From Octopus bimaculoides (lineage: Eukaryota): a DNA stretch of 38,856 nucleotides. The notes below the pieces were generated by a model. It made no database searches and had not been told where the DNA came from. It saw only the letters and a program-made list of their open reading frames with translations. The stretch covers positions 18,678,879 through 18,717,734 of the forward strand of contig NC_069007.1 of NCBI RefSeq assembly GCF_001194135.2. Reading direction: 5' to 3'. The stretch's first letter is position 1, and each line of letters begins with the position of its first letter. Positions 8,650 to 11,140 of this stretch are shown one piece after another. Both the position numbers and the translations under genes were made by a program.

Positions 8650-11140
8650 TAAAGTAAAAACTCTTACTGGTTTCTGCTGAAGGTTTTTTATAGTTGGTGC
8701 CAACAGTTCCTTTCATGTCTTCATAGCCTCCAGCAGACTGGAATGAGGGAAGATTTACATGGTTAATTAAGTGCTAATTAGCCCCAGGTTAGTCCTGACT
8801 GAGCAGGTCTATGATCAAAGGTGTTATAGTAATGATTTCATGAGAGTCGGTGCCATGAAAAAAAAAAAAAAGCATCCGTTTCCTGCAGTAAAGTGGTTGC
8901 TATTAGGAACGACACCTGACCATAGAATGGCATGTCAAAGAAGATATTAGAGCACAATGCAGTACTTGGACCCATCGGATCCTCTCAAACCATCCGACCC
9001 ATTCCAGCATGGAATATGGATTGCTTTAACTAAAATCCCAAAGAAGGATAAAATGAATTCTTGGCTGTTTGAACTGGATCAATCTGCATCTGCATGATTT
9101 TGGGGGTCAGCCCCACTGTACAGCACCTTTGGCATTGTCTTTCACTATAGCCCTGGGTCAACCAATCAACCAATGCCTTGTGAGTGAATTTGGTTGATGG
9201 AAACTGTATGGAAGCACCCTACCAGTGTTGTATAATTGGTACCCGTGAAATTGTAGTCGTAGCTGTTACCGGTGTCGTGCCAGTAGCACGTAAAAGCACC
9301 CATTACACACTCGGAGTGGTTGGCATTAGGAAAGGCTGTAGAAACCATGCCAAATCAGACTGGAACCTGGTGCAGCTCTCCAGTAAAACCAGTTTCAATC
9401 AAACCGTCTAACCCATGCTAGCGTGGAAAGTGGACCTTAAATGAGGAGGATACAGAGCTGTTTAAGAGTCCATACGTCAGGAGAAAAAAAATGCACTCGT
9501 ATTATATATCCATAATGGCCAATCTTTCCAATCGGTTTCGAACTATGGGTCCAATGGAGTGTTAGGTAACAGTCTGATTATGTAAAAGGGGCCAATTTTG
9601 AAAAATCTGCTCAAGGTGTGTGGGAAGTATGTCGCTCCCCTTGCCACCCTATTAGCTACGCCACTGCCACCTACCCTTATATAAATGCAAGGGAGCCATA
9701 TATCTTCCCTATACTAAGACATCACTGCTTGTCCCTGGCATTAAAATCTCCTTCCCACCTTTTAAATACTCCCTCACAAAGATAAAAAAAAAGATCTACC
9801 TTATCCTTCGTATTGTCGATTCCAAATTTACCACCAAAGCCTTTCTTCATATCAATTTGAGAAGAATGAAGTTCTGTTTTAGTATCATCCTCATAGCTAA
9901 GCGCAGACTTGTCTTTGACATCCTGCACACCGTATTTGCCGCCAAAGCCTTTTTTCATATCAATCTGAGATGAATGGAGTTCAGTCTTGCACTCAGCATC
10001 GTAGCTGAGGGCATTTTTATCCATGGTGTCTTGGATGCCAAACTTGCCTCCGAATCCTTTGTTCATGTCGACTTGGGAAGGATGCAGCTCAGTCTTCGTC
10101 TCGTCTTCGTAACTCAAGGCTGCTTTGTCTCGACGATCTTTCTGGACACCGAACTTTCCACCAAATCCATGTGAATAGTCTAAAACAGCAACATGTACAG
10201 ATGAAAACAGATAAAACATATACAGACAACATAGATGTACATATATCTCAATACATGGTTTTTGTAATGGAGTAATGTTCTCATTCTTCTATTAAAAAAT
10301 GCCTAAGAAACAGCTGTTATGAGCTGACAATTATCTATCGTCTGTTATTATTCATTTGATTATAATACACCAAGAGGATTTACGACTTCTTGGATAACCT
10401 AGAATATACCAACAACGCACAATTCAACGTAACGCGTGCTTTGGACCAGCCCCTAGGCACTAAGTACTCTTAGGATTGGTTTTCTCTGTGTACACAACTG
10501 GAATATCCTATTTTTATTTCTTTATTGCCCACAAGGGGCTACACACAGAGGGGACAAACAAGGACAGACAAGGAGATTAAGTCGATTACATCGACCCCAG
10601 TGCGTAACTGGTACTTAATTTATCGACCCTGAAAGGATGAAAGGCAAAGTCGACCTCGGCGGAATTTGAACTCAGAAGAACGTAACGGCAGACGAAATAC
10701 CGCTAAGCATTTCGCCCGGCGTGCTAACGATTCTGCCCGCTCGCCACCTTGATATCCTATTTGATACTTACCAACCATGGGTTGCAACCACAGGTTTAGC
10801 CAACCCTATCTGGTGCATATTATTCCATGTGTGTGTGTGTGTGTGTGTGTATAGATAGACAGATGTGTATATAAATGCAACATATGTACACATGCATATG
10901 TATATGTGGGTGAGAATATATGATGTGCCATGAATAAATATTCAGGATAGACAACAAGTAATAAACAAAGGGCCTTATCTCTATACACCCATACATATAA
11001 ATATTCTGACAACAAAGAAAAATTTACTTGTCCTTCCGACTGTTTTGGAGTACCAGATTCATTGATTTCTCTCTTCCATTGGATTACATCACCTTTTTAT
11101 TCATTCGGAGTATGCCATTTCTGCACCTTTGATTGCGAAT

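Follow-up and report, generated by a model that had tools for sequence, protein, structure and literature searches.

Vertebrate cortactin (CTTN) binds F-actin and stabilises Arp2/3 branches, and cryo-electron microscopy of the vertebrate branch junction shows one 37-residue repeat spanning ~5.5 nm, from DA1 to DA3 (PMC11102864). In the model put forward there, 6.5 repeats reach DA13, a half-turn, and repeat number is proposed to tune binding; HS1, which has 3.5 repeats, binds more weakly (PMC11102864). Across the family the number of repeats ranges from 3.5 to 6.5, and the way they are packed into exons differs between species (PMC554100). A limited literature search returned no account of a distinct terminal repeat type, of terminal repeat amplification, or of the repeat architecture of mollusc cortactins. 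Here we describe a minus-strand cortactin gene in a 38,856-nucleotide (nt) stretch of the Octopus bimaculoides genome (RefSeq assembly GCF_001194135.2, contig NC_069007.1, positions 18,678,879 to 18,717,734; hereafter the window), in which one exon close to the end of the repeat array encodes 3.5 repeats and was probably enlarged by duplication within the exon.

The terminal-repeat exon and its modules

The terminal-repeat exon, exon 10 of our gene model, is 380 nt long and lies on the minus strand at 9800..10179 of the window (10179-9800 in the direction of reading). It has canonical AG/GT borders, with ttgctgttttAG on the 5' side and GTagat on the 3' side, and was placed on the strength of these borders, continuity of frame with its neighbours, its translation, a Pfam HS1_rep match and an orthologous exon in a related species (locus L001). 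The exon is entered in phase 1 and left in phase 0: its first 2 bases finish a split Asp codon and 126 codons follow, in frame with the 13 other cortactin exons of the window. Taken alone, it matches HS1_rep in 3 stretches (E=4e-47). Its GFGGK motifs are spaced by 37, 36 and 36 residues and followed by a 14-residue half repeat, and it thus carries repeats 7-9 and the half repeat of the gene. An original prediction for this DNA had decomposed the exon into 56 + 3 x 108 nt, which holds, and had read it as 37 + 36 + 36 + 18 residues, which in the D-Y-S register agrees with the spacings given here.

The 56-nt head (10124..10179) encodes (D)YSH and 15 residues; it supplies the first half of what was ancestrally the last full repeat, and the same head is found in the 167-nt exon of the oyster Saccostrea cucullata. 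Three 108-nt modules follow on the same strand. Module 1 (10016..10123) encodes a 22-residue linker of the terminal type discussed below and a short stretch of 14 residues, module 2 (9908..10015) again 22 and 14 residues, and module 3 (9800..9907) 22 residues and the 14-residue terminal half repeat, after which comes the donor GT. The three shortened segments that had been pointed out before, IQDTMDK, VQDVKDK and IDNTKDK as against VQKDRRDK, are present, as is the contrast between the linkers of this exon and those of the upstream 111-nt exons. An 18-residue stretch does occur twice, with exactly 8 synonymous differences.

The modules share only 64-70% of their bases (that is, 30-36% of bases differ), and in the three pairwise comparisons the differences fall at codon positions 1/2/3 in the numbers 7/6/26, 6/1/27 and 6/5/21. 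Because of this low identity, Tandem Repeats Finder detected no 108-nt array in window positions 9600-10400, and the repeat is evident at the protein level only. For the window exon and its L001 counterpart (see below), pairwise estimates by NG86 gave a nonsynonymous divergence (dN) of 0.10-0.28, while the synonymous divergence (dS) was saturated and mostly undefined; codon-position counts were therefore used in place of dN/dS. The dominance of third-position differences and the range of dN bear out the proposal that these are old copies on which purifying selection acts.

Origin of the modules and alternative readings

In full-length invertebrate cortactins the last full repeat has a linker type of its own, as seen in the last linkers of Saccostrea (SAVGYSSHEKVPLHPSQTDMSK), Mytilus (SAAGYDSKETMALHSSQTDSKK), the spider Uloborus (SALGWEEVTKVEAHPSQTDMKK), the sea spider Nymphon (SARSWEEVTKTEAHSSQTDMKK) and the mite Dinothrombium (SALGWDDITKTEAHSSQTEYKK). 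We use "terminal-type repeat" as a working class for a last full repeat with a ..T.[EA][LA]H[PS]SQ.D[MH].K linker. The first linker of exon 10 is identical at 17 of 22 positions to the 22-residue last linker of the hemichordate Saccoglossus and at 19 of 22 to that of module 1 in L001, and against the genomic open reading frame (ORF) P0060 a window linker reaches 16-17/22. Scored blind against the last linkers of other species, exon-10 linkers 1/2/3 reached mean BLOSUM62 values of 50/45/52, and against internal linkers 36/35/38; for the linkers further upstream in this gene the order is reversed, the internal linkers being the closer. The acidic linkers (ELHPSQ.DMKK) that had been taken for a second class of repeat therefore represent the ancestral terminal repeat type, the same as the last linker of oyster, mussel, spiders, mite, sea spider and Saccoglossus, and that type predates the protostome-deuterostome split. 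The one-residue deficit is likewise not peculiar to this exon: Saccoglossus, P0060, P0013 and L003 have 14-residue, one-short terminal half repeats, and the tardigrade Hypsibius, L004 and P0011 have 36-residue repeats.

In the window and in loci L001-L005 the terminal-type repeat is encoded in an exon with a shared acceptor, (D)[YH]S.GFGG, and a shared donor, the gt directly following ..D[KEQ] inside the half repeat. The length of this exon varies. In Saccostrea cucullata (L002, GCA_032062105.1) it measures 167 nt and holds one module, made up of the 56 nt, one linker and a 15-residue half repeat, and a length of 164-167 nt can be deduced from the genomic ORFs P0060, P0086 and P0089. Two modules are present in L003 and L004 (275 nt each), and three in L001 (383 nt), L005 (389 nt) and the window (380 nt). 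Judged from these loci, the terminal exon changes length in one-module steps. Since the oyster exon already has one module between the same borders, the window has two extra 108-nt modules and not three, and the starting point is not the 56-nt half-repeat exon of the original prediction.

We consider it likely that the terminal-repeat exon of this cortactin gene was enlarged by two rounds of in-frame, intra-exonic duplication of 108 nt, in keeping with its tandem in-frame modules and with the earlier proposal of intra-exonic duplication for an intronless multi-repeat exon. The ancestral exon would have held one module in 164-167 nt, as in oyster. The duplicated module would have consisted of the 22-residue linker of the last repeat (..TKTELH[PS]SQ.DMKK) and the 14-residue, one-residue-short start of the next repeat, and the window and one related species (L001) would in this way have reached three modules and 380-383 nt. 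The 36-residue period would most simply result from duplicating this 22-residue terminal linker together with the 14-residue short half repeat (108 nt). The enlarged exon is expected to be constitutive, as skipping it shifts the frame and it offers no usable internal donor. By analogy with the vertebrate branch junction, each repeat would lie along the daughter filament and bridge two successive subunits of one strand (~5.5 nm), so that the extra repeats would lengthen the F-actin footprint from ~13 to ~19 subunits (~52 nm). A longer footprint would presumably bring higher filament avidity and more stable branches or bundles, and the one-residue deficit, which falls in an extended, flexible segment, would be tolerated.

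Enlarged exons are not confined to the window. Among the sequences fetched, two or more terminal-type linkers were found only in protein P0007 (from L001) and in a group with the linker SAKGW..ELHPSQTDHKK, hereafter the SAKGW group. Two such units also appear in each of the full-length spliced transcripts P0131 (Logan ERR10172490, L006) and P0145, and amplified terminal units are therefore expressed in those animals. In the species of P0131 (compared with P0432-P0444) an intron lies just before the VDHKK-GFGG of the half repeat, and a single large exon runs from VDHKK-GFGG through the Pro-rich region; the borders of the terminal-repeat exon are therefore not universal among animals with amplified units.

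One old expansion, common to the window, L001 and L003-L005 and followed by secondary loss of modules in oyster and mussel, would account for the identically bordered exons of 275-389 nt in four other species and for the extra 36-residue unit in L004 and P0011. Linker identities argue against it: out of 22 positions they amount to 12-19 for the window with L001 and 11-19 within L003-L005, as against 9-14 between both groups. The linkers thus cluster by lineage and not by position, which favours independent amplification or concerted evolution, and concerted evolution could itself mimic clustering by lineage. The possibility, raised with the original prediction, that the intronless block is widespread among invertebrates, and hence ancestral, is borne out in part, as a multi-unit exon occurs in at least four other species. 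The proteins of oyster, mussel, chelicerates and a hemichordate have one module. With these one-module proteins also counting against a shared expansion, we regard it as unlikely. If amplification was indeed separate, the terminal module may be a recurrent, selectable site of amplification, with at least two invertebrate lineages (the window with L001, and the SAKGW group) having gone independently from one to two or three modules, an F-actin footprint extending past the half-turn, and a 36-residue period that is tolerated or favoured; we put this broader view forward tentatively, as somewhat less probable than its negation.

A further alternative confines the exon to its first 56 nt or to another portion of the 380 nt, the modules being intronic or alternatively spliced out and the long form rare or never made. 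Removing the modules would keep the frame, as 324 nt is divisible by 3, and no transcript of this species was among the results of our searches. The orthologous exon of L001, reached through protein P0007 on European Nucleotide Archive contig ERZ21867824, ctg104047l, has 383 nt, the same borders and the same layout (37+36+36+half, the terminal half repeat having 15 residues), and is collinear with the window exon at 79% protein and 72% DNA identity. The 106 base differences between the two are distributed 20/14/72 over codon positions 1/2/3, with 53 synonymous as against 27 non-synonymous codon differences, and the frame is open across the 380 nt in both species despite saturated synonymous sites. 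The 150-nt intron flanks of the window and L001, by comparison, were no more similar than shuffled sequence. The third-position bias and the unalignable introns together indicate that the entire 380 nt has long been kept as coding sequence, and the whole exon is accordingly old, constrained coding sequence under purifying selection. The internal donor after 56 nt that the original prediction had named as damaging to its case is absent: position +56 reads AAA/GCAGCC, with no GT. The exon has four in-frame internal GTs, which agree with the donor consensus at 2-4 of 9 positions, the real donor at 7 of 9. Since 380 mod 3 = 2, a transcript lacking the exon would enter the SH3 domain out of frame, and the oyster exon runs through its one module to the same donor. 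A partly intronic exon is therefore quite improbable.

Marginally less probable still is cDNA-mediated insertion, which the original prediction had entertained, or intron loss fusing several single-repeat exons. Either could place several repeats in one intronless exon, and in Drosophila repeats 1-3 are packed in one exon by intron loss (PMC554100). In the window, however, all three linkers belong to the terminal type, and not one of them is like those of the upstream 111-nt exons; the acceptor and donor keep the positions of the one-module oyster exon, and the length gap to oyster is ~2x108 nt, not a number of 111-nt exon units. Because no extra unit resembles the upstream repeats and the exon borders are unchanged, insertion of a cDNA is unlikely. 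That an assembler echoed a repeat in a gap-rich draft is hardly credible even with nine N runs and many microsatellites in the window, since the modules differ at about a third of their bases, mainly at third codon positions, no N run lies within or adjoins the exon, and three modules in the same arrangement are found in the independent assembly of another species. On this evidence we rejected an assembly echo, a donor inside the exon at +56 and the insertion of a cDNA.

Several points weigh against intra-exonic duplication as we have drawn it, or against what it implies. Three protein searches, with the 126-residue exon, the 658-residue model and its 375-residue C-terminal part as queries, together with a scan of 1.84 billion cluster representatives, which yielded 441 proteins at E<=0.001, and an exact look-up, returned no transcript or annotated protein of this species. 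Among the matches listed the highest identity was 74% (P0007), vertebrate cortactins dominated the lists, and match lengths followed query length. Exact look-up of a 165-residue ORF of the window gave no record, nor did that of the Mytilus protein P0186, and a scan of metagenome contigs with the window/L001 alignment produced 545 pattern matches, 0 of them confirmed. Inclusion of the full 380 nt in mRNA is thus predicted from conservation and not read from transcripts. The terminal half repeats of L001 and L004 have 15 residues and their internal ones 14, which keeps the origin from a 22+14 unit conjectural. Module 2 of the window shares GFGGKYGVQ with module 2 of L001, and its linker is nearest to that of L001 module 3 (18/22), with only 12/22 identity to L001 linker 2. 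Orthology of modules between the two species is therefore not clean, and conversion between modules, which this pattern suggests for the pair, or partly independent duplications may have taken place. Finally, the repeat total of the gene hinges on an exon concealed by an assembly gap, and also on the use of both copies of a recently duplicated exon, described below.

The surrounding gene and the rest of the window

The gene belongs to the cortactin (CTTN/HS1) family, as originally identified: it has the DDW region, HS1_rep repeats, the helix and the start of an SH3 domain. A model built by tblastn with cortactin fragments and by inspection of splice sites comprises 14 exons, all on the minus strand, with AG/GT at all borders and one frame from the ATG and DDW region into SH3. 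Pfam reported HS1_rep on the model in 10 stretches (E=2.6e-146) as well as the start of SH3. Exon 1 (25058..25147, placed by tblastn and its splice donor) encodes 30 residues from the ATG, an N-terminal acidic region with the DDW Arp2/3-binding motif that is 58-64% identical to other cortactin N termini. Exons 2 (24297..24370, 24 residues) and 3 (23741..23870), both located by tblastn and splice sites, lead into the repeats, the last 16 residues of exon 3 being the first half of repeat 1. Exon 4 (23232..23342, 111 nt), like the following repeat exons placed from its splice sites, holds the repeat 1 linker and the first half of repeat 2. Repeats 3, 4, 5 and 6 each occupy a 111-nt, phase-1 single-repeat exon at 20796..20906, 19142..19252, 18342..18452 and 12126..12236, respectively, the last being the next exon upstream of the 380-nt exon.

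The exons for repeats 3 and 6 are recent paralogues. A segment of 353 bp occurs twice in the window, at 12077-12429 and 20749-21099, with 91.5% identity, and consists of the 111-nt single-repeat exon flanked by intron sequence, ~190 bp upstream and about 50 bp downstream. Exons 12236-12126 and 20906-20796 are thus a recent exon duplication inside the cortactin gene; they differ at several residues (H/R, A/S, D/E, V/I). In Saccostrea cucullata the terminal-repeat exon is closely preceded by a repeat exon of 111 nt with well-formed AG/GT borders (JAVVLV010001144.1, 10026-10136 of L002) that the annotated protein P0137 does not include. This exon may be a cassette, as are the repeat exons that undergo alternative splicing in vertebrate CTTN.

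Downstream of the terminal-repeat exon, exon 11 (8668..8737, splice sites) carries the half repeat onward for 23 residues and has homologues after the terminal-repeat exon in L001-L005. Exon 12 (7713..7861, tblastn) encodes the helical region, which aligns with the post-repeat helix of other cortactins, and has a 70% identical counterpart in L001. It is followed by exon 13 (6994..7371, splice sites), a Glu-rich, Pro-containing region, and by exons 14 (4980..5070) and 15 (4009..4064, 19 residues), which encode the start and the middle of SH3 and were placed by splice sites and Pfam. Among named proteins, Mytilus cortactin matches the non-repeat C-terminal part best (36% over 255 residues), and the SH3_1 match (E=2.9e-6) covers profile positions 1-25 of 48 only. 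Two expected pieces were looked for: the motif of the last SH3 exon (..WW.G..FP.NYV) and that of a ~55-nt exon for the repeat 2 linker (phase 0 to 1) occur nowhere in the window, and both exons therefore probably lie within assembly gaps, the SH3 exon in the N run 3116-3671 and the repeat 2 linker exon in the N run 22117-23086. Counted provisionally in this way, the gene has ~9.5 HS1-type repeats, compared with 5.5-6.5 in oyster and mussel models.

The window contains nine N runs, among them 677-1663, 3116-3671, 4642-4947, 19987-20602, 22117-23086, 25920-26169 and 33382-33913. Microsatellites are very dense, with (CA)n, (TA)n, (CT)n and (CAT/CAC)n tracts at, for example, 1-700, 3675-3900, 5600-6900, 8340-8700, 24400-25000 and 26200-27300, and most long ORFs in the six-frame list are translated microsatellites or N runs rather than genes. 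Pfam found no match in four other long ORFs of the window. The plus-strand ORF 31384-31788 (..LLPHLPYSPDLALVDFHLYAKM..), without a Pfam match, has what we take to be a likeness to the C-terminal DDE region of mariner/Tc1 transposases; it is at most a decayed transposase fragment.

Comparison with described cortactins

Repeat number is thought to set the reach of cortactin along the daughter filament and its stabilisation of Arp2/3 branches. A natural cortactin of ~9.5 repeats, with three terminal-type repeats and two 36-residue periods, would provide ready constructs for testing whether affinity and the lifetime of branches depend on footprint length and repeat spacing. Our view of the family is also corrected, in that the last full repeat already had its own conserved linker before the protostome-deuterostome split. 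Otherwise this is ordinary evolution of repeat number in a known protein: the old, conserved amplification of modules within the exon makes a familiar domain longer and does not create a novel repeat type. A 2005 comparative paper described cortactin as confined to metazoans. Protein P0372 of the choanoflagellate Salpingoeca kvevrii (EukProt) has a cortactin-like N terminus, three HS1-type motifs with spacings of 37 and 36 residues, and a ..LSVHSSQRDMKR linker.

Vertebrate CTTN, with 6.5 repeats of 37 residues, resembles the window gene in its acidic DDW region, its HS1_rep repeats mostly encoded one per 111-nt phase-1 exon, its helix and, for the part recovered here, its SH3 domain (PMC554100). 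It differs in that its last linkers are of the ordinary ..KHESQ.DYSK type, whereas the window gene has ~9.5 repeats, three terminal-type linkers, two 36-residue periods and 3.5 repeats in one exon. Repeat number and packing also vary in Drosophila and mosquito cortactin and in HS1, but through reductions and intron losses and not through amplification of the terminal unit (PMC554100). In the tardigrade Hypsibius exemplaris (P0143) there are 36-residue repeats one residue short in the same G.Q.DR.DK segment; these are internal, with ordinary linkers, and no terminal-type amplification accompanies them.

Several other cortactins share the exon itself. Saccostrea cucullata (P0137, L002) has the same terminal exon borders, a ..PLHPSQTDMSK linker, the half repeat, the SAG.Y..M.G exon and upstream 111-nt single-repeat exons, yet its terminal exon holds a single module in 167 nt, where that of the window holds three in 380 nt, and its half repeat has 15 residues instead of 14. 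The SAKGW group (L003-L005, P0131/P0145) has two or three terminal-type units per protein, in the same exon in L003-L005 and with a 36-residue extra unit in L004; its linker consensus is SAKGW.E..K.ELHPSQTDHKK and its units are mostly of 37 residues. The exon of L001 agrees with that of the window in its collinear layout of 37+36+36+half, the 79% amino acid identity given above, the same borders and the 70% identical downstream helical exon, and departs from it in its 383 nt, its 15-residue terminal half repeat and its diverged linker 2.

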